A stretch of 37,289 nucleotides of DNA. It comes from Macrostomum lignano (lineage: Eukaryota). Positions 1 through 32,558 of the stretch are shown here, piece by piece (position 1 is the first letter of the stretch; the number at the start of each line of letters is the position of its first letter). The DNA lies in the NCBI GenBank assembly GCA_002269645.1, contig NIVC01004713.1:1-37289 (forward strand). The letters run 5' to 3'. The notes under the pieces are model-generated. The model saw only the letters and a program-made list of their open reading frames with translations, had not been told where the DNA came from and did not search any database. Made by a program: the position numbers and the translations under genes.

Positions 1-7
1 CTAGAGA

Positions 8-164
8 GGGTTGTAGTCCAGTAGTTAGAGTGTCGGACTCAGGACTGAAAGGTCGGGGGTTCGATTCTCAAGCCACTCGAACAATTTGTGTCCTTGAGCA
101 AGACACTGAATTCTGCATTGCTTCAGTTTACCCAGCTGTAAAATGGGTGCCAGCATTAGCTGGG
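8..164 (+). mobile_element. tRNA-derived SINE with CORE-like central domain, 5' part (copy 1, split by a nested transposon)
   Basis: A-box-like TAGTCCAGTAG and B-box GGTTCGATTC, followed by TGTGTCCTTGAGCAAGACACT...CCCAGCTGTAAAATGGG, which resembles the MIR/CORE domain. A close paralog lies at 14508-14711. Confidence 0.8.

Positions 165-200
<36 letters not shown>
165..200. repeat. (GT)n microsatellite, left half; continues at about 4475-4510
   Basis: Pure GT run on both sides of the 207-4469 insertion. Confidence 0.95.
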
Positions 201-4469: not shown

Positions 4470-4509
4470 CGTGATTGTGTGTGTGTGTGTGTGTGTGTGT
4501 GACTGTGTG

Positions 4510-4593
4510 TGGCGACCCCAGTCCTTGGACTGAACAGCCGTACGCAGCCTTCAGATGCGCCGCGCAATAGCTGCGGCTGAGCTGTGGGTTGCA
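4510..4593 (+). mobile_element. 3' part of the split CORE-like SINE
   Basis: GGCGACCCCAG...GCGGCTGAGCTGTGGGTTGCA matches the 3' part of the copy at 14508-14711 (GGCGAACCCCCAGCGGCTGAGCTGTGGGTTGCA). Confidence 0.7.
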
Positions 4594-4807
4594 TCCTTAG
4601 AAATCAAGGCATCCAAGTTTCTTTTAGTCTTTTAAGCCTCAGTTATTGAGTAGCCAATATTACTAGATATAGAAATTTGGTATACTCGTAAAATGTTTTT
4701 TTCTTTGAAATTCTGTCTGTGTGTCTGTCTGTCTGCCTGTGCCTGTCCGTCTGTTTTCGAGTCCATGATCAGCTGACCGCCAGCCTAAATTCCAAAACAC
4801 ATTCCAG

Positions 4808-14168: not shown

Positions 14169-17088
14169 ATGAAGCGCATCGCCGCACTGCTATTGTGGAT
14201 TTTCTGTTTCATTTGTCTGCATCTGGCGCTGGTCCTGAGCTGCGATAACTGTAAGACAATTAGCTGGTATTTCTCTACAACTGCAGTCGATTATCATGCC
14301 TACGGTATAGCTTAGCCACCAGGATTTTTCAATCCATACTGGAGGGGTGTGTCCCAAAAGTGAATCAATTTGGGCTATTCTGTAAGGAGGGTTAGCCATG
14401 TACTTTTGCTAGCCGGCTGGGCAAACGACGCCCCCCATCTACTAGCCCTGCATGGCGTCCTGATAACCAGTTAATAATCAGTTGATAAACTCTTAGGGCT
14501 GCATGCATTGTAGTCTAGTAGTTAGAGTGTCGGACTTGCGACTGAAAGATCGGGGGTTCGATTCTCGACCCACTCGGAACAATTTGTTTCTTTGAGCAAG
14601 ACACTTAACTCTGCATTGCTTCAGTTCACCCAGCTGTAGAATGGGTGCCAGCATTAGCTGGGGTAATTAAAAATATATGGCGAACCCCCAGCGGCTGAGC
14701 TGTGGGTTGCACATCTGGCCATTGGGGCAGGTGAATCAATTTTCTATATAACGCTCAACGAATTTATTATCCAGCAATATTCAGAACGTCATATAGATTG
14801 CAGTCTCAGCCCAGTCAAACCGATCCCTGCATGGCAACTCCGCAGGGCGCTACCGGTTCCGACCTGTCCAGAACTCGTCTCTGCTGGCGCCGCCGCAGAC
14901 CGCCAGCTCGGAGCTCCGCCAGCTGCGGTTCAGCACGGCGCCCGGATTCGGCAGCACCGAGTGCGCCGCCGCCTGCGGCCGGATGTTCCACTGCCGGGCC
15001 TTCGCCTTCTGTCCGAAGGACGACTGCGTTCTGTACTGGAACTGGGGACCGCCGTTCCCGCCCTCCGGCTGCCAGCTGCCCGTGATGAGGAAGCTGGGTA
15101 AGGAGTCTGGGATGAGGCAGCTGGGTACTGGGAGGCTTGGAAGCAAAGGAATGAAGAAGCTGTGTGCTGCGAGCCGGGAGGAACCGCAGTGCCAGGCTCT
15201 GATTGAAGTGCAGAGGCATTGGGAGACTCTTTGAGTGTCAAGTTTAGTCCATGGGGATGGCAGAGCCGGCCTATGGGTTATCATTCAAGCTGTATTGATC
15301 GCTGCTGGAAATTTTGTCCCCCCACATCTATGCCATGCGAGAGCAATGAACCCCTATTAGATATGGACGCGATATGCAGGTGGATCCGCATACTGGAAGC
15401 TACAGAGTGCTACCCTCAACCCTCCCCAAACCCAAACACACAAGAAGTGGGGGGGGGAATACTGGGAGACGAGATTTAATATCCAATTATTTCATGGGGA
15501 AGTCTGTTGTTGTAGCTCAGTGACTCCCATTCTTGAGCTTATAAATATTGAACAAATTCAATATTTTCCCACGGCTTACAATTTTATCGGCTTTCTGATT
15601 TAATAGGGATATTTATTATTTCAAATCCATACTACTATCGGCAGTAGTAAGAGTAGTTTTTTTTCAAGTGCTAAAATATTTTTGCTTACCTAGAAGAACG
15701 GCTTCCTAGAATTGGTTCTAACTATTTTATCTCTGAAGCTATTTCTCAAAGGTACACAAAATCCTCGAATTTCCATTGCGCAGTGGCCCGCTTCGAGTCA
15801 TGCATCGAGCGCTGGGTTGGCAACCGCAGGTTCTGCCTGATGCAGCAGAGAATTTCTGGCAGCGTCAGCTTCGTTCGATCTTGGACCGAGTACGAAAACG
15901 GATTCGGTGATGCAGACAACTTCTGGATTGGTGAGACAGGAGAGATAGAAGAGAGATTGAAAGGGGAGCAGAGGGAAATGGCAGTTTGAGAATTGTTTCA
16001 GCCAATCAGCTACGACATGATACAAGCGTAAAAGACAATAGGACAGGCTCCTTAGCTAGTATGCAGTCCCAGCCAATCAGCAATGAGATAGGGATAGAAA
16101 ATTATAGAACGGGCTCGCATAGTATACAGATGTCCCAGCCAATCAGCAATTAGATAGGGATAGAAGATTACAGGACTGCCTCTCATAGTGACTATGTTTT
16201 AGCCAATCAGCGATGAGGTAGGAATAGAAGACTGCAATACGGGCCTGCATGGTGAGTAAATGATTGTGGGAGATTAAGATTCCAGCCTAGAGTAGTAATT
16301 TGATGCCTAAGCCTTAATATTTAAATAAATGAGGCTTAAAAATAGACTGCCTCAACAATACAGGCCTGAAGACGTTTCGCTCCTTGACGCCCGCTACCGT
16401 TCGATTCGAGCTCACCAAATTCAACGGCAGCCAGTATCACTGCGAATACGACGGCTTTACGATTGGCGACGAGGCTTCGAAGTACACGATGGACTACTCC
16501 AGGTGCAGTGAAAATTGTTGCTTAATCTTTGAGCATGGTCGCTCCTATTTTGTTGATAGAGTTGCCAGCTTAGCATTTAGGAACTCGGAGCTGTACTCAG
16601 CAACAGCTAAACCCAACCCACTAGCTAACTCACGCTGTCAGGCTGTCTGAAGTTAAGCAATGCCATATAGGTTATGCAATAACGTGTGGTGAAGGAACCT
16701 CGAGCATTCAAAATTGTCGTCACTCATCGCGTGCCACTGCTGGCCTCCCAGATAAGATTAGCGATATCGATAGCAAGCCAATCGATCTCTGCCTTGCAGG
16801 TACGCAAGCGAGAGGTCGAACATCGCCACGGACTCGCTGCACGAACGCAATCGGGGCATGAAATTCTCCACCACCGACCAGGACAATGACGCGCTCAGCT
16901 CAGAGTGCTCCAACACCTACGGAGGCGGCGGAGGCTGGTGGTTCGGAGCCTGCTTCAGGGCCAATCCTAATGGAGAGTACTCTAACACGGAGGTGTGGAA
17001 GCAGACAAAGTACCTGAACTGGTACTACATCGACGGAGATTTCGTATCGCTGCGGGAAACCCGCATAATGGTGCAGTTGGACGGCTGA
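14169..17088 (+). CDS. Secreted fibrinogen-related protein: signal peptide, PAN/apple-like Cys domain and fibrinogen C-terminal (FReD) domain, 302 aa
   Basis: Exons 14169-14250, 14846-15097, 15784-15930, 16364-16502 and 16800-17088 total 909 nt with consistent phases. Hydrophobic N-terminus MKRIAALLLWIFCFICLHLALVLS. ECAAACGRMFHCRAFAFCPKDDCVLY. FReD motifs SFVRSWTEYENGFG...FWIG, MKFSTTDQDND, GGWWFGACFRANPNG. Confidence 0.88.
14508..14711 (+). mobile_element. tRNA-derived CORE-like SINE, copy 2, in intron 1 of the FReD gene
   Basis: TAGTCTAGTAG A-box, GGTTCGATTC B-box and TTGAGCAAGACACTTAAC...CCCAGCTGTAGAATGGG; closely similar to 8-164. No TSD seen. Confidence 0.8.
16000..16255. repeat. Degenerate 64-71 bp tandem repeat (AGCCAATCAGC...GATAGAA) in FReD intron 3
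   Basis: GCCAATCAG at about 16001, 16072, 16138 and 16202, with partly conserved downstream sequence. Confidence 0.75.
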
Positions 17089-18173
17089 CTGAGATGCAGT
17101 TGATGACCAGAAGCTGGAGCAAATAAAATCCCGGAAAAATTTAACTGTCAAAAACTCCCCGTGGCTTAACGCTATTTAAGAGTATATGATTTTAGTCAGG
17201 TTGTTAACTGCATATATCAAAAGGGTCTGCACACCATAAAAAAACTTTTTCTTTATAAGTGTAAAACATCTCTAGCCTCAAGAGGCAATTAACCTCTTGT
17301 TCAAGGTCTTTGGAAATTTACGCCCTTATAAGGAATCAGCTACAACTTCAAGACGATTTCATAGTTGTATAGATTGAAAAACTGCCTGACTGCCTGACTG
17401 ACAGAAAGCAGCGATTGCGTGTCTACACATACAATACAAGACTGGCTGACGCAGCTTCACCCCTCCTTGTCCAGGCACCTACTATAGAAGGAAGCCATGA
17501 GCCAAGCTCAAGCCAGAAGCACATCACAAACTATTTAGTCATTTGCTGTGGAGTTACCGTCGTTGTTTTGGTTACAAGCAACACAATTGTCTCCATCTCC
17601 ACGGCTCTCAGTGGCAGTGGAAATATTCAATCCCAGCGCCTATTCTCTTCAGCCAATCAGCGTTGAGTCAATGATTAAGTCATATTATTCTACCTAAAGC
17701 TGCTAAGCACTTAGGTAAATACAGGGTTAGCTAGATATAGGAGAGATAGGGAGAAGCAAAGTAAAGGTAAGAAATGAAAGTGGACGGGCGAACATTCAGT
17801 TTTCTTCTCTTAATTATATTCATTTTATCAGCGTCATGATCGTTGTGCAAGCCAAAGCTGTTTTTGATAAGAACTCCTAATGCAGTTTTCGAATCTCAAC
17901 TATTATAATTATTTTTACTAAATCTCTATCGATTAAAATTAAAATTAGCCAATTTTTTGCAACAACCGATATTATTTGTAGAGTGGGCTGTGAAGTCTTC
18001 GAGAGTTTGTTTGCACTTTGCTCGGCCGCAACAGTGCAATGCTGACAGTCAAATACATGTATCATACCCGGTGCCTGCTGTGATAGCAGTTGAACAGAAT
18101 CTACGTATTAAAAACTGAGAGTAATAATTAGCGGACTAAATATTAGCGAAACAGACAAATATTTCGGAAATCG

Positions 18174-18397
18174 CAGGGGTCGGCAAACTCAGGCCCGCGG
18201 GGCACACACAAGAACAGAAACTTCACAATAGCAATCCGGCCTAGTTAAGGCTTGTCTTTTCTCAGCTCTCTTCTCTCCTTTCTCCTTCAATCTCTCTTCA
18301 ATCCTTTTCCCCTTTCCTCTCTCCCCAGCTCTGGCTCGCAGTCATGAGCTGGATTCTCTACCTAGCCCTTCAGGTAAAATAAGTTTGCCGACCGATG
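18174..18397. mobile_element. hAT-like MITE, about 224 bp
   Basis: TIR CAGGGGTCGGCAAACT against AGTTTGCCGACCGATG (14 of 16 match), typical of Charlie-type hAT ends. No clear 8-bp TSD. Confidence 0.65.
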
Positions 18398-18991
18398 CGC
18401 TTAAAGAAAAAAACTAGCGGCGTTTCGCTAACGCCAAAGAAAAAATCTGCCAAAGATTAGCGGACATTAGTGGAAGTATATGCCCAACATTTTCAGATAG
18501 CAATATATAATGGCTAATCCACTAAGTAATAAGCCAGTAGCCCTTGACACTCGACCACGATTCAATTAGATTATTACGTATTTACGAGCTATTTTAATAC
18601 TACTCTGATGAGCTAAAACGGAGGCAACCAAGCCTCAATCATTTGGGAGGCAAACAACCAAACAACTCGTAAAGTTAAATGAAAATAGCTTACCAAAATA
18701 AAGAATCTACGTTATCTCTATATAGAAAATTACAAACATACTTACATACGCTCGGATTGTTATTAATAAAATCAGAATCTGATCATTCAGGCTGGCTTGT
18801 GCACTCGAAGTTTTTTATCAATGACAGCAGACCAAACACGCAATGATCTCGCGTTCAGTTTAGCTTTATTCGGTTTAAATATATAGGTAAAAACAATACT
18901 AAAAAATTAATGACAGCAGGTAAGAAAATGCGCGAGAGAGAATAAAACTTCGACAAAAACCAACTAATTACTAAAAGTAGAAGTGCATCGC

Positions 18992-19111
18992 TTATCTTTT
19001 AGGCCTTTTCTTGCATTTAGTCTTCTTGGATTTCCTTTGAAACTTTCGCTTTTTTGGCTTCGTCTTCAATTCGTCTTTAAATTTCTTGTTGAAGTTCTTC
19101 TTTGATTTCAT
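18992..19111 (-). pseudogene. Duplicated fragment of the NOL12 last exon with open frame (39 aa if started at ATG 19111)
   Basis: Translates MKSKKNFNKKFKDELKTKPKKRKFQRKSKKTKCKKRPKR*, against the parent RSKKSFNKKLKDELKMKPNKRKFQRKSKKKTKGKKRSKR*. Confidence 0.7.
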
Positions 19112-19967
19112 AGTTCAAGAAAAAAGTTGATAAATTTTGTTTAAAAAAACTTACTGACGGACAGAAAGACAGCATCAATTGTTGTATCTGCTGCTTCACT
19201 CCATCCCCATTCCTCTGAGGTGCCTCATACAATACAAGGCTGACTGACGCAGCCTCACCCCCTCTTTGCTCAAGCTCCAACTTAGAAGCCAGCTCAAGCC
19301 AGAGACAACCGACAATTGTGTCCATCTTCACGACGCTCGGAAGCATTTCAATTGTTTCAACTCCCTGTTTTGGCGCGCTTGTAAAACAAAAACAAAGCAA
19401 TGGCACCGCAAATCCCCTTTGCTTCTAGAAGTCTTCGATCCCAGACTCAACTATGCACCACCATTTCTGCACTAGCTACACTACAATCGATTCCTTTTAG
19501 CCACGCAAAGCAGTTTTGTCCCATTGTTGCTTCTGTTCAGGAAAAAAGCCTATGCAGGGACGCCTAAAGTCAGAAACCTGGAAATGTTTTTCTCTAAAAA
19601 GTGTCTAAAAATTGAAGTCACAGCTGCGATCTTTCCTCTTCAACTAATCAGCCTTGAGCCGATGTTTAAGTAACATTATTCTAGCTAAAGCACTTCAAAA
19701 AATGAAAGATTAGTTAAAGAAATTGTTAATGATATAGGAGAGATAGGAAGAAGTAAAATGAGGTAGGAAATGAAAGTGGATGGATGGGAGAACATACGAG
19801 TACAATATGCTTCACTTAGCTATAATACTCATTTAATCAGCGTCATGGTTTTTGTGCAAGACAAAGCCGTTTTTGATAAGAATTCCGAATGCAGTTTTCC
19901 ATCTTTCAACTATTATAACTTAAACTAGACTATTGCTTATTTAGTTTAACATTATGTTGTGTCTAAT

Positions 19968-20480
19968 GAGCTGAGAGGCAACCAAGCCCCAATGAGCTGG
20001 GAGAGAGAGGCAACCAAGCCCCAATGAGCTGGGAGAGAGAGGCAACCAAGCCCCAATGAGCTGGGAGAGAGAGGCAACCAAGCCCCAATGAGCTGGGAGA
20101 GAGAGGCAACCAAGCCCCAATGAGCTGGGAGAGAGAGGCAACCAAGCCCCAATGAGCTGGGAGAGAGAGGCAACCAAGCCCCAATGAGCTGGGAGAGAGA
20201 GGCAACCAAGCCCCAATGAGCTGGGAGAGAGAGGCAACCAAGCCTCAATGAGCTGGGAGAGAGAGAGGCAACCAAGCCCCAATGAGCTGGGAGAGAGAGA
20301 GAGGCAACCAAGCCCCAATGAGCTGGGAGAGAGAGAGAGGCAACCAAGCCCCAATGAGCTGGGAGAGAGAGAGAGGCAACCAAGCCCCAATGAGCTGGGA
20401 GAGAGAGAGAGGCAACCAAGCCCCAATGAGCTGGGAGAGAGAGAGAGAGGCAACCAAGCCCCAATGAGCTGGGAGAGAGG
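19968..20480. repeat. 32-38 bp minisatellite GAGCTGG(GA)nGGCAACCAAGCCCCAAT, about 15 copies
   Basis: ACCAAGCC at 19981, 20013, 20045 and onward. The internal (GA)n lengthens toward the right. Confidence 0.96.
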
Positions 20481-20807
20481 CAACAAAGTCTCGAAAGTCA
20501 GATGAAAATAATTTACTAATATCATTAGTTTACATAATCTCTTTGTCGAAAATTACAAATATACTCACGTATTTTATTACTAAAATTGTTTCATGAATAA
20601 GATCATTCAGCTCATTTAACTCGAAAACTTTTTATCACTGACAACGGAGCAGACGCGCAATGATCTCGCGTTCAGTTTTGCTTTATATTTTGGCTTAAAA
20701 ATATACAGGTAACAATGCTACAAACTTCAATGACAGCAGGTAAGAAAATGCTTGAGAGAACAAAACCTCGATAAAGGCAGATATTACTAAAAGTAAAATT
20801 ACATCGC

Positions 20808-22348
20808 TTATCTCTTAGACCTTTTCTTGCCTTTAGTCTTCTTCTTGGATTTTCTTTGAAACTTTCGCTTGTTTGGCTTCATCTTCAATTCGTCTTTCAA
20901 CTTCTTGTTGAAGCTCTTCTTTGATCTGCGGACCGGAGACGCGAGAGCAATGATCAGTTTCTCGCACTGCCTACTGGAAAGTAGCATGTTAGGGAAAATT
21001 TAAAATGGTATGCATTGACAAGCTCACATTGCTGGTAGTGGCTGAGAAGGACCTGACTGTTGTGCCGGCTAAAATAGAAAACAAAATATATACTGGCAAT
21101 AATTAAATGACTTTTCATGCTACTTACCAGATGTGTATACTACTAACCGTATAATAAACTTCTTTTTAAGTTTCACATGAGAATTCTCCAGTGAGTTGGA
21201 GGGCGATTCTTTAGGGGTTGGAGGGCGATTCTTTAAAAATGGGAGGGCGATTTTTTAGTGGGTTGGAGGGCGATTCTTTAAAAATGAGAGGGCGATTTTT
21301 TAGTGGGTTGGAGGGCGATTCTTTAAAAATGAGAGGGCGATTTTTTAGTGGGTTGGAGGGCGATTTTTTAGTGGGTTGGAGGGCGATTCTTTAAAAATGG
21401 GAGGGCGATTCTTTAGGGGTTGGAGGGCGATTTTTTAGTGGGTTGGAGGGCGATTCTTTAAAAATGGGAGGGCGATTCTTTAAAAATGGGAGAGCGATTC
21501 TTTAAAAATGGGAGGGCGATTCTTTAAAAATGGAAGGGCGATTTTTTAGTGGGCTGGAGGGCGATTCTTCAGTGTGTTGGAGGGCGATTTTTAAGTGAGT
21601 TGGAGGGCGATTCTTCAGTGGGTTGGAGGGCGATTCTTAAGGGGTTGGAGGGCGATTGTTAAGGGGTTGGAGGGCGATTCTTAAGGGGTTGGAGGGCGAT
21701 TCTTAAGGGTTGGAGGGCGATTCTTAAGTGGGTTGGAGGGTGATTCTTAAGGGGTTGGAGGGCGATTCTTAAGGGGTTGGAGGGCGATTCTTAAGTGGGT
21801 TGGAGGGTGATTCTTAAGGGGTTGGAGGGCGATTCTTAAGGGGTTGGAGGGCGATTCTTTAGTGGGTTGGAGGGCGATTCTTAGTGAGTTGGAGGGCGAT
21901 TCTTTAGTGGGTTAAAGGGCGATTCTTAAGGGGTTGGAGGGCAAATTCTCATTGGGTCTGATTTTCAAATTTAAAAAACGACTTATTAAAGAGTTAATTT
22001 GCTATAAAGAACAGCACAGCAAGCTCACAGTAGCGGTAGGCTGCAGGTCCAGCTCAGTAACCGTGACAGTGTGCTCAGGCAGCTCCTCAGTCACTGGCTG
22101 GCACTCAATCATCTGCATATCCGGTGCCAGAACTCCCGCCCGCTGCAGCACCAGCGCCTCGTGCCGCTCCTTCAGCAACCGTTTCTCCTCTTTTAACTCG
22201 TCCGCCGCCTTGCGCAGGGCCAGCTTGCGCCGTTCCACTTTGCGCTTGTGAAATCCGGTCAGGTATTCGGCTCGTTTAGCCTCGTCGAATAGAATGACGC
22301 GCTTGGCGGTTGGCTTTTGTTTTTCTGCTTTGATGGAGGTCGCGTCAT
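20808..22348 (-). CDS. NOL12: Nucleolar protein 12 / Rrp17-like, about 175 aa; needs one extra base in the A5 run near 22320-22324
   Basis: Exons 22348-22029, 21068-21028 and 20973-20808 (GT-AG). Family motif LFDEAKRAEYLTGFHKRKVERRK and a Lys/Arg-rich C-terminus. The ATG at 22348 is one base out of frame with this motif. Confidence 0.85.
21195..21945. repeat. 22-24 bp minisatellite (GGGTTGGAGGGCGATTCTTAAG and variants) in NOL12 intron 1
   Basis: Constant GGAGGGCGATT core with several flank variants. Confidence 0.95.
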
Positions 22349-23439
22349 GACTTCAAGCTGCAGTGCATTTTAGTGTCACTATGAGAACTTTTATGAGCAT
22401 TGTCTATAATTAAACATAGATGTCAGATGAGATCAAAGATTTTAGGATTGGAATTACATTTTACAGCTATTATAATTGCCTCTGGTACACCCATTAAATC
22501 ACACTACTTTTATCCTATTTTACCAATTCCAGACTGTCTCAGACTCAAAAAAGAAAACATTTTGGACTTTGTAAGATCTTGAAATTTAAGACATTAAGAA
22601 TCTTGTTAGATCACTTTATTTGGTCTTCTTGGGTCCCCTTTTTGCTAAAAAATTAAGGCTAAAAAGCAAATTATGGCATTTGAATAATAAAGGTAAAGGA
22701 CAAAGAAAATTTATAACTAGGAGAATATCTATGTCCTTATATAAAATAAGCTTAGCAAAATTTTTAAAAGGCTAAAGATCAGAAAAAGCTGAATCTTTTC
22801 TTATTAACTTTCTTCATCTTTTTTTCTACTTCACAAATAATTCTGCATGATTCTATAAGTGCATGCCAGGTATGCACATACACTATTTTCTTAGGAGTGA
22901 TGCATGCCAACTGTGCATGTCTACTTTTGGCATACATGGCCAATGCACACCCAAATTTTGGGCATATACTATATGATTCAGAGTGTGGCTTGTGGTCACC
23001 TTGTTTTATCACCAAAGTAAAAGCTTAAATGAAACTGAAAGCTAAGCTAGGCCTAGGGCTAGGTCTAGTCTAGGCCTGGGCTTTTCTTGCAATACTACAA
23101 GTATTAACTTTTATAGGCCTAAGCAGATAAATAATAGACCTAGGCTTAGCCTAATAGGCTAATACTAGGCCTAATTAATACTAATGGGCCTAAGACTAGG
23201 AAAATATTGTAGGCCTTTTAAGTTTTAAAATTTAATAGGCCTAGGCCTATACAATGAGATAGGCCCTATGTTGCTGTTAGGGGGGAGGGGGGGCCAGGCT
23301 ACAAAAGTAGGCCTAGACCTAGGCCCTATCATTAAAAAATAAAAAAATTCTTATCTAAACATGAAATTAAAGATTAACAATAAAGGCCTATTCAATAATA
23401 AATAGATAGGCTTTACAAAAGAAAAATGGACATTATCAA

Positions 23440-30054: not shown

Positions 30055-30416
30055 AACTTTAGTCGTAGCCCTAGCCGTAACCATAGTCCTAGCCGGAACC
30101 TTAGCCGTAACCTTAGCCCTAGCCCTAGCCCTAGCCGTAACCATAGTCCTAGCCGGAACCTTAGCCGTAACCTTAGCCCTAGCCCTAGCCCTAGCCGTAA
30201 CCATAGTCCTAGCCGGAACCTTAGCCGTAACCTTAGCCCTAGCCCTAGCTGGAACCCTAGCCGTAATCACAGGCCTAGCCGTAGCCCTAGCCGTAACCCT
30301 AGCCCTAGCCGTATCCATAGCATTATCCCTAGCCGTAACACTAGCCCTAGCCGTAACCATAGCCGTAGCCCTAGCCGTAACCCTAGCCCTAGCCGTATCC
30401 ATAGCATTATCCCTAG
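30055..30416. repeat. Telomere-like hexamer array (CCCTAG/CCGTAG/CCGTAA/CCTTAG) with a 60-bp higher-order unit, left arm
   Basis: 6-bp periodicity; the sequence repeats with a 60-bp period over about 30065-30245. Confidence 0.9.
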
Positions 30417-31058
30417 TTGTTGTTGTTGTTAATTCCCGGCCGGGTTAATATCCGGGGGCGGGTTTGCGCCCCTACCGCCTGGAGGAAGTGCAGTGCGCGC
30501 GGGCCGTCGTCGTGGAGGATGGCCAGCGTCGGGTTCTCGCCCAGAATTTGTCGTCTGGTCTCGGTCGTGGCGCGACATTCCAGGAGCAGGTGTTTGAGGT
30601 CCTCCGGGGCCTCCCCGCAGGCCGGGCAGGTGGCCTCCGGTTCCAGCCCGATGCGGTGCCGATACTGTCGGAGTATCGGGCAGTGGCCAGAGCGTAGTTG
30701 GGCTAGCAGGACTCTGTCCTTACGGTTCATGGAGGTTTGCTGTTTGGGTCGTCGGCCGTTGATGCAGGTGCGGTGGATGCTGCAGTGCTCGTTTGTCTCA
30801 TACGATCGGATGAAGTCGTTGTGGGCCGTCGCCAGAATGGCAGAGCGTGCGCTGCGGTGATCCAGGGGTGCGTTGGTCTGATCAAGGGTGGCAGCAGCGC
30901 GGGCAGTGGCATCGGCGAGATCGTTGCGACGAAGGTCGCAGTGGCCCGGGATCCATTGCAGGGTCACGTGATGGCCAGGCGGGAGGCGTCCCAAGATGCG
31001 CAGTATGTCGCGGCAGCAAGGGGAGAGCCGCGGGCTTGGGCCGCCTTTGGATAGAAAT
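30417..31058 (-). mobile_element. 5'-truncated non-LTR retrotransposon (RNase H C-terminal half plus C-terminal Cys/His knuckle; I-group-like) with (AAC)n tail
   Basis: ORF reads TLQWIPGHCDLRRNDLADATAR (RNase H) then LAQLRSGH...CPACGEAPEDLKHLLLEC and ends in (AAC)n. Flanked by TTATCCCTAG at 30407-30416 and 31059-31068. Confidence 0.9.
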
Positions 31059-31200
31059 TTATCCCTAGTCGTAGCCCTAGTCGTAGCCCTAGCCGCCATT
31101 ATCCCTAGTCGTAGCCCTAGCCGTAGCCATAGCCCTAGCCCTAGCCGTAACCGTAGCCCTAGCCATAACCGTAGCCGTAACCCAATCCCTAACCTTGAGT
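31059..31200. repeat. Telomere-like hexamer array, right arm
   Basis: Same CCCTAG/CCGTAG/CCGTAA units, including one true CCCTAA near 31187. Confidence 0.88.
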
Positions 31201-32558
31201 AAACCCCAACTCTCAATCACATCACCAACTTTGTGCTAACTAGAGAAAGCCAAATTTGAGCTTCAATTATTTATCTCGTAAATTGAAATTATTGCGCTTA
31301 TGAGCTACCAGTGTTCCTAGATGTGCCATCAGATGCACTGCAATACATGCAAACCAATTTGATCTGTTGGCTCTTCTAATTAACCTTTGCTTGTTTCCCT
31401 TGCTTTATTTTGCATAGCGAGTGGCAATAAATTATGAGCAAATTTGTTATACTGATAAATGTAGTAAATTAGACACATCAGTATGTGTCATTTCAAAGTC
31501 AATTTCTATCCAAAAAGTGGTCAATTTTAGTAATGGTTAAATTTATTTAAATTGTACGAGTCGTTTTGGTAGGAAAGAACAATACAACACTTGAAATATA
31601 GGTCAACCTCAGAAGTTGGATTAGAGGGGTTGAATAATTCTTTAATAATTAATTGAATTAATAATAATAATATAATGTAAACGACCAGTTTAATACAAGT
31701 GCCGATATAGTTTCTTTATTTAAGAAAGCACACGATAAAATAGCATATTTTACGTTAATGAGTCAGTCTGTAATTACTCGAGAGAACAGCTTTGTCAGTT
31801 GTAAAAAAGCAATTGTTTAGGCGCCAGGACTAGAGAGTAAATTTTTTTAAACAAGCTTTCGGTTTTGAATCCAGATCCAGACAGTCGTGCATGGGCGCAG
31901 AAATTGAAAAAAAATTAAAGCACAAATCTTGCTACTCTTTAGTAGTTAGCATGATTTTAGTATACATTTTATGATATATATGTGTAAATCTAAAAAAACT
32001 ATATTAGTACATGGGTAGCAATGACTAGAACAAATGTATGCGTATGAACAAAAATAAACCACAGCAACTGTTAAGAGTTCGAAAGGCTCTGCAAAAATTA
32101 ATTGTTTCATAAATGGTTATCCAACTCTACTTACAGAAAAGCACGCAGCCAACATGGAAATTTATCATTGCACAACAAAAAGCACAGCCAACACAAAATT
32201 GTACTTCTTATTCTTTTAATCGAGTCCCAAATAAATTCTGCTTCTGCAACAGAGTTGAAAAAATCCAAGCAAAAGTTTAGTAAAAGGTACACGCACAAGC
32301 CAAAACCATAATGCAATACTTTATCAATTTGTTATCGTAATCGCGGTTACCTAGGAGACAAAGAAAAGCTCCAATTGGGAGAACAAAAAAGTTGGTTTCT
32401 TGGAAATCCGTGGAATTTTATTAAACGGAACAAATGGGAAAATTTTAATAGATAAAAATGTAATACTCAACAAGCGCAATATGCTACATACGCTACTTGT
32501 GCAGTAGTAAAGTTAGTAGCGTGTTAACTTCTCTCCGTATTTGAATAGCCATTGCGGA

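Follow-up and report, generated by a model that had tools for sequence, protein, structure and literature searches.

When a repeat array and a low-copy version of the same unit lie side by side in duplicated DNA, which of the two states came first? The question is raised by a locus on contig NIVC01004713.1 of the Macrostomum lignano assembly GCA_002269645.1 (Mlig_3_7), the whole of which (37,289 nucleotides) we analyzed and refer to as the window. A fibrinogen-domain (FReD) gene and NOL12 converge there, and a tandem duplication in the spacer separating their 3′ ends carries a minisatellite array in one copy (copy B) and a single full unit of it in the other (copy A). The first-pass annotation of this DNA proposed that copy A preserves the pre-expansion state, that the array grew in place rather than arriving by transposition, and that a (GA)n tract lengthening along the array records the order of expansion. 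We put the probability that the array is a locus-specific variable number tandem repeat (VNTR) minisatellite, born and evolving in place in the FReD-NOL12 spacer, at about 0.8.

Four further copies of the locus were gathered through the RPL10 and NOL12 protein clusters (L004, L007, L002, and L003), and an older flippase-RPL10 paralogue (L005) was also compared; ~135 kb of M. lignano DNA was examined.

The array in copy B and its counterpart in copy A

Tandem Repeats Finder detected the array at 19973–20479 with a period of 32, 15.1 copies, and 96% matches. When the array was parsed on GGCAAC, we obtained 15 full units (eight of 32 bp, one of 34 bp, four of 36 bp, one of 38 bp, and one of 30 bp), in agreement with the ~15 copies first counted. 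A head-to-tail array of 30–38 bp units with a 26 bp core falls within the range of ~10–100 bp units that characterizes minisatellites and VNTRs, and variant units are interspersed (CCTCA, A or C at unit position 11, and GGGA, GGGAGGGA, or (GA)n). Written as a search string, the unit is GGCAACCAAGMCYCAATGAGCTGGGA. A 30-mer of the unit has 15 matches in the window, with 0 expected by chance, and the 12-mer GGCAACCAAGCC occurs in the 15 array units and at 18623 in copy A, with no other site in the window. The array unit near 20241 that had been picked out as keeping copy A's variant is indeed there: it is unit 9, the sole CCTCA unit of the array. One strand of the array is G-rich and contains GCTGGGAGG, which may resemble the “core” of Jeffreys' probe 33.6 and the chi sequence.

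The counterpart in copy A had been described as one unit in unique DNA. It does contain one full unit (18623–18648, 26 bp, of the CCTCA type and with a single GA), but partial units flank it on both sides. Over 18608–18657, 40 of 46 positions match the 26 bp consensus with one 4 bp insertion, which amounts to ~1.8 unit-equivalents. Because copy A already has a two-period structure, it does not capture the birth event itself. The type of its unit suggests that CCTCA may be the ancestral form.

Copies A and B are paralogous, as had been supposed. The duplication spans the last exon of NOL12, its 3′ untranslated region (UTR), and the downstream spacer, and its copies are ~78% identical, with three collinear A/B blocks of 76%–83% identity found by BLAST. 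The copies abut head-to-tail at a definable junction. With this arrangement, the lack of filler at the junction, and 3 bp of GAT at the breakpoints, the locus resembles microhomology-mediated tandem segmental duplications; it differs in that the mechanism is not assignable from one junction that is ~22% diverged in age. The coordinates of these features are collected in Table 1.

Table 1. Features of the duplicated FReD-NOL12 spacer, in window coordinates
Feature	Position	Strand	Remarks
Copy A (1749 bp)	17358–19106		Contiguous with the FReD gene flank; TTCATAGTT at 17358 and 19107
MITE-like inverted-repeat element, copy A only	18162–18409		Inside ~650–700 bp of A that is not in B; relatives in L005
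Pre-array segment common to copy A and L003	18407–18573		L003 17661–17820, 64% identity; deleted in copy B
Low-copy repeat of copy A	18608–18657	+	5′ partial (ATGAGCTaaaacGGA), full 26 bp unit, 3′ partial (GGCAAaCAA)
Duplicate of the NOL12 last exon in copy A	18992–19111	−	Junction-supplied ATG opens an intact 39-aa lysine-rich open reading frame; the alternative frame has a stop codon
A/B junction, CTTCTTTGAT followed by TTCATAGTT	19097–19115		GAT also at both outer breakpoints (3 bp microhomology)
Copy B (1819 bp)	19107–20925		Contiguous with the remainder of NOL12; CTTCTTTGAT ends at 19106 and 20925
5′ partial unit of the array (ATGAGCTGAGA)	19966–19976	+	From parsing on GGCAAC
Minisatellite array, 15 full units of 30–38 bp	19977–20478	+	26 bp core GGCAACCAAGCCCCAATGAGCTGGGA plus a nested (GA)n in each unit
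Landmark unit 9 (34 bp), sole CCTCA variant in the array	20233–20266	+	7th from the 3′ end; type matches copy A's unit
Incomplete terminal unit (GGCAACAA)	20479–20486	+	Continues into the 3′ flank
Sole AATAAA between the NOL12 stop codon and the array	20573–20578	−	Conserved in L003; mutated at the equivalent copy A site
NOL12 last coding exon (lysine-rich tail, stop codon included)	20808–20925	−	First base is the right duplication breakpoint

The right breakpoint of the duplication (20925, and 19106 in copy A) sits on base 1 of the last NOL12 exon, inside the 3 bp GAT microhomology. This position would suggest a retrocopy, a possibility we rejected: copy A contains ~1.6 kb of DNA beyond the poly(A) signal and no upstream exon, and for that reason we treat the breakpoint at the exon edge as a coincidence. 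The exon part of copy A is 8% diverged from that of copy B, compared with 25% in the neighboring UTR, which hints at past constraint or gene conversion.

On either side, the DNA bordering the array in copy B has its homologue beside the unit in copy A. The unit was not found in the rest of the window, in L002, or in L005, and its matches are confined to orthologous or paralogous sites within the ~135 kb examined. That the array arose and evolves in place, and was not brought in by transposition, is well supported within this DNA, in keeping with the first-pass proposal.

Delivery by a mobile element (a miniature inverted-repeat transposable element [MITE], a short interspersed nuclear element [SINE], or a Helitron with internal repeats), with the insertion inherited by both copies, would be a different origin, and transposon-like DNA with copies elsewhere does adjoin the repeat. 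The MITE-like element of copy A has 28-nt inverted arms that are 79% complementary, and L005 21921–22166 is related to it at 71%–72% identity. L003 carries at this locus, as the only copy to do so, a dispersed SINE-like element of ~270 bp (17306–17570), with relatives at 85%–92% identity in the window (5–183, 4500–4597, and 14509–14691) and in L005 (1225–1490 and 2259–2523); ARAGORN did not recognize its tRNA-like head. In addition, the pre-array segment contains recurring TTAGCGGA and TCCGCTAA motifs. However, each of the two elements is specific to one lineage and lies beside the repeat and not around it, neither terminal repeats nor a target-site duplication brackets the array, and the dispersed unit matches expected of a transposon-derived tandem repeat are absent from the DNA examined. 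We therefore regard delivery by a mobile element as very improbable. Because part of copy A's extra ~700 bp is the MITE-like element and part is shared with L003, this stretch reflects a transposon insertion in part and a deletion in copy B in part.

Variation among copies of the locus

The M. lignano genome is described as comprising three subgenomes with ~2% single-nucleotide polymorphism divergence and very large indel differences (Ershov et al., 2023; PMC10733133). L004 (NIVC01004058.1) is 99%–100% identical to the window, has both copies A and B with the same junction, and carries 13 units. L007 (NIVC01002535.1) is near-identical, but its contig begins inside copy B, of which only a part is present; the layout is the same 13-unit one as in L004. 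L002 (NIVC01002534.1; 99.9% identical) stops before copy A and does not cover the array. L003 (NIVC01002536.1), whose flanks are 0%–2.3% diverged, is single-copy, runs through both breakpoints uninterrupted, and carries 27 units. Copy numbers thus differ (15, 13, 13, and 27, counted in assembled contigs and not in genotyped individuals), and the array is polymorphic and still changing. The array is common to the window-type and L003-type versions of the locus and for that reason is older than their separation, and older than the first-pass annotation had assumed.

The two window-type alleles are distinguished solely by what lies 5′ of the CCTCA landmark: the 13-unit allele has six units 5′ of it, one of them (GA)5, compared with eight in the window. 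The seven 3′ units (34T-36-36-36-36-38-30) are identical in the window and L004, and L007 departs from them only in 1 bp gaps close to where its contig ends. Counted from the 3′ end, the CCTCA unit is the 7th in each of the four arrays (window, L004, L007, and L003), and given its position in copy B, the chance of a matching position in L003 is ~1/27; we take the 3′ parts of the arrays to be homologous by descent on this ground. All four arrays also end in an incomplete unit, passing from G/CGCAAC into the flank.

The L003 array differs in composition. A majority of its units are 26 bp long (GGCAACCAAG[A/C]CCCAATGAGCTGGGA) with a single GA, many others are 30 bp units with GGGAGGGA, and position 11 is A in most. 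The few (GA)n-expanded units are located at the 5′ end. The basic unit is 26 bp, exactly the repeat spacing of copy A.

In the window, the (GA)n counts along the array are 2 (in the 5′ partial unit), 4 (in eight units), 5, 6 (in four units), 7, and 3. The tract does lengthen over most of the array, as had been noted, but the increase is not monotonic, and the idea that it records the order of expansion did not hold up. The last unit has the shortest tract of the full units, a (GA)5 unit sits amid the (GA)4 block of the 13-unit allele, and in L003 expansion is found at the 5′ end and most units have a single GA. The last unit contains GGGAGAGA in copy B and GGGAGGGA in L003; GGGAGAGA, which is (GA)3, is one base from GGGAGGGA, and so a one-base step between the two forms can be seen directly. 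We suggest that a 4 bp duplication would have turned GGGA into GGGAGGGA, the form common in L003, that one G-to-A substitution would have produced GGGAGAGA, and that slippage would then have extended the tract to (GA)4–7. This form would have been homogenized through the window-type array until it reached every unit. The (GA)n is then a secondary microsatellite nested in the unit and holds no record of the order in which units were added.

The M. lignano assembly is described as containing 15% simple and tandem repeats and as heavily redundant (Wudarski et al., 2017; PMC5730564), and 36% of the length of Mlig_3_7 is reported to lie in chimeric scaffolds (PMC5730564; PMC10733133). Misassembly of such a genome could in principle create a duplication or alter an array length, and 1 bp gaps are present near the end of the L007 contig. 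Nevertheless, at only ~78% identity copies A and B cannot represent one allele, collapsed or expanded; L004, an independent contig, has the junction and the two copies as well; and the 34T-36-36-36-36-38-30 pattern is the same in the window and L004 and, gaps aside, in L007. The likelihood of an assembly artefact is, in our view, negligible.

The accessions of L002, L007, and L003 are consecutive, and these three may lie on one scaffold; if so, L003 would be a nearby inverted paralogue and not a subgenome homeologue. L003 also has, at 15287–15911, an array rich in CAG runs with an 84–93 bp period, where the orthologous window site (~16534–16749) has none; this is a second array at the locus that is present in one copy and absent in another. 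L005 was considered as an outgroup and rejected, as it has neither the FReD-NOL12 spacer nor any of the window's repeat units.

Which state came first

When A, B, and L003 were aligned globally with MAFFT, only the 3′ block was reliable, and the middle was compared by sensitive local alignments. In the contiguous 3′ block, the Jukes-Cantor distances are 0.224 between A and B, 0.226 between A and L003, and 0.075 between B and L003. Constraint on the UTR was rejected as the cause of the similarity between B and L003, because the flanking DNA of the window and L003 differs by only 0%–2.3%, a baseline that the B-L003 UTR difference of 6.7% exceeds. The topology of this block is accordingly (A,(B,L003)), and its long internal branch gives room for an origin of the array. 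Eleven arrays were followed through four or five copies of the locus, and none showed a collapse. We lean toward copy A as a low-copy state that never expanded, because the best-aligned block favors it and because of this lack of collapse elsewhere, and we rate it as an even chance.

The first-pass annotation went further, with copy A as the pre-expansion state, the array gained on the B lineage after the duplication, and (GA)n as the record of unit order. The (A,(B,L003)) topology permits a gain after the A/B split, copy A has the simplest 26 bp, single-GA form of the unit, of the CCTCA type that survives as one landmark in every array, and it has the flanking direct repeats expected of a founder. 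Taken as a whole, however, that account is doubtful: copy A already spans ~1.8 periods and the birth itself is unseen, the array is old and common to L003, the distances in the left flank are close to a star, and the proposed (GA)n order is at odds with the (GA)3 of the last unit, the interspersed (GA)5 of the 13-unit allele, and the opposite-end expansion in L003.

Several observations count against our own reading of the locus. The unit counts come from a PacBio-era assembly, and L007 has the 1 bp gaps typical of a contig end; the locus specificity of the unit is based on the ~135 kb examined. The exclusion of the array from transcripts depends on a single AATAAA. The direct repeat of copy A (GGAGGCAA[C/A]CAA) matches at 11 of 12 positions at a spacing of exactly 26 bp, as in the low-copy state of a proto-minisatellite with direct repeats one period apart, and its score was reached by 1 of 300 shuffles of its sequence; but direct repeats equally good occur in 14 of 150 natural control windows, and it is therefore not special in itself. 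In the alignable blocks to the left of the array, the three lineages are nearly equidistant (branches of 0.123 for A, 0.085 for B, and 0.085 for L003), and a 170 bp segment is common to A and B and not in L003; both would fit L003 splitting off before the duplication. The arguments on polarity are weak, since the sequences compared are A, B, and L003, with no outgroup to the A/B split. A founder and a minimal collapsed array look alike, and gain in B or collapse in A is one event each.

If L003 is an outgroup to the duplication on that side, then the array was already there when the duplication took place and passed to both copies, after which copy A collapsed to one full and two partial units and decayed by point mutation (ATGAGCT to ATCATTT). 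L003 is unduplicated and yet has a long array, diverse internally and with variants of its own (most units have A at position 11), which speaks for this history, as do its left flank, about equally far from B and A, and the A/B segment that it lacks. The end structure of copy A (5′ partial, full, and 3′ partial unit) is also that of the arrays, and the long A branch would have allowed time for a collapse. In the best-aligned block, on the other hand, the distance between B and L003 is a third of that from either to A; the arrays compared elsewhere gave no precedent for collapse; and for precisely the rare CCTCA unit to be the one left would have odds of 1 in 15 to 1 in 27, if it was not common at that time. 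A collapse of copy A is a real possibility, to which we give somewhat less than even odds.

The remaining large indels are each specific to one lineage and uninformative on branching order. L003 as a simple unequal-crossover product, with its left from A and its right from B, was not supported, as its left blocks are no closer to A than to B.

For the locus-specific VNTR that we favor, what is established is a tandem duplication of old date, ~1.75 kb long and with GAT microhomology at its junction, that copied the last exon, 3′ UTR, and downstream spacer of NOL12. The array itself would have been born, in the manner of the Haber-Louis and Taylor-Breden models, when slippage or unequal exchange between direct repeats spaced 26 bp apart duplicated the intervening DNA. 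Its later growth, through gene conversion or unequal exchange between sister chromatids, would have been more active on the 5′ side.

The surrounding contig and known minisatellites

The array is one of many. At least 19 minisatellite arrays make up 27.6% of the contig; they are mostly intronic, and each unit is confined to its own site. In the stretch that the window has in common with L003 and L004, all 11 arrays occur in each copy, with very different copy numbers (for example, 10 versus 54 and 40 versus 25).

The locus lies in an island of divergence between the window (~16400–20800) and L003 (~14950–18950), with 7% difference at the edges, an unalignable core, and 0%–2.3% difference around it; for comparison, the published divergence between subgenomes is ~2%. 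A general tendency of minisatellites to raise the divergence of their flanks was rejected as a cause, as 0 of 607 sites differ beside the RPL10 intron arrays; because other arrays leave their flanks undiverged, the array alone does not explain the island. The relatedness of B and L003 switches at the array, from a distance of 0.075 to its right to ~0.17 to its left. Two ancient structural haplotypes, one duplicated and one single-copy, might have persisted across the recent genome duplication, with NOL12-side crossovers or conversion tracts repeatedly ending in the array. We consider this quite unlikely; if true, the array would be an active recombination boundary and not a passive passenger.

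The contig is gene-dense, with genes for a phospholipid flippase, RPL10, NOL12 (minus strand), and RabGGT-alpha, the last exon of the FReD gene, a non-long-terminal-repeat (non-LTR) retrotransposon fragment, and a PHACTR-like gene. RPL10 is 220 aa long when its two window exons are spliced and is 100% identical to a Macrostomum lignano protein. The FReD exon stops at 17088. Look-ups of the open reading frame in this exon and of one spanning the array gave no match, and neither the window nor L003 or L004 yielded anything when scanned with Rfam and for tRNAs. The non-LTR fragment (RNase H/C-terminal region; 30413–31216, minus strand) has arrays based on a TAGCCC-type hexamer on both sides (30060–30416 and 31059–31194).

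NOL12 was identified through Pfam Nop25, and the relatives found were M. lignano copies only, followed by vertebrate matches. It has three coding exons on the minus strand (20808–20925, ~21027–21068, and ~22030–22357). In a 162-aa isoform the last exon gives the lysine-rich tail; in the annotated isoform P0129, which lacks the small middle exon, another frame of the last exon is used (IKEELQQ...EED). The last exon thus appears to be dual-coding, with two isoforms reading different frames. Relative to L003 and L004, the window copy is frameshifted in an A-rich run near its start (22316–22331, minus strand), and its gene model (P0179) is truncated to 82 aa. Either the assembly has a homopolymer error here or the copy is disabled. 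Because the array begins ~95 bp beyond the NOL12 poly(A) signal, it most likely lies outside the mature NOL12 mRNA. No function of the array is implied.

Parts of this picture have precedents. Microsatellites are said, from the work of Messier et al. in 1996, to be born when a point mutation makes a minimal run that slippage then extends. The (GA)n tract is similar in that GGGAGGGA and GGGAGAGA are one base apart, the second being (GA)3, with (GA)4–7 to follow; it differs in being nested in a minisatellite unit and in owing its spread to the turnover of units in addition to its own slippage. Gray and Jeffreys reportedly argued in 1991 that minisatellites are evolutionarily transient and that low-copy “proto” states in related primates correspond to human arrays. 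Here, too, one locus occurs in low-copy and expanded states among related sequences, but both states lie 1.8 kb apart on one chromosome, as tandem paralogues.

A single locus of this kind has little weight, other than as a teaching example of in-place repeat growth. The M. lignano DV1 line, with its three subgenomes and older paralogues, nevertheless allows arrays to be compared across several internal copies, and with one or two outgroup Macrostomum genomes, a census of arrays against one- to two-unit cases could measure rates of birth, growth, and collapse. Direct measurement of minisatellite turnover has so far been hard in other animals.

The polar variation of hypervariable human minisatellites such as MS32 (Jeffreys et al., 1994, as cited in PMC3389668) offers the closest match in structure. 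The array shares with these loci head-to-tail units of 26–38 bp, interspersed variants, length alleles, and change at one end, here 5′ of the landmark. It differs in that polarity is deduced from three window-type arrays (two allele forms) and one diverged copy and not from pedigrees, in that no recombination hotspot is known beside it, and in that it is one of very many, with arrays taking up 28% of the contig.

For its origin, the relevant comparison is with the Haber-Louis and Taylor-Breden models of minisatellite birth, as summarized in PMC3389668. In the terms of that summary, the models are matched by the direct repeats of copy A (8 of 8, extending to 11 of 12), which lie exactly one unit apart, and by arrays that close with an incomplete unit (GGCAAC and then flank). 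The cases summarized there compare orthologues with a known branching order, whereas at this locus two paralogues are set against each other with no outgroup to them, and the low-copy state, already at ~1.8 periods, gives a contrast of low-copy with expanded and not of before with after birth. An outgroup that shows the low-copy state to be ancestral is the key requirement that stands outside the match; in its structure, the locus fits what the birth models predict. It is an ordinary VNTR, and the birth models and the pattern of a low-copy state giving rise to an array are already established.

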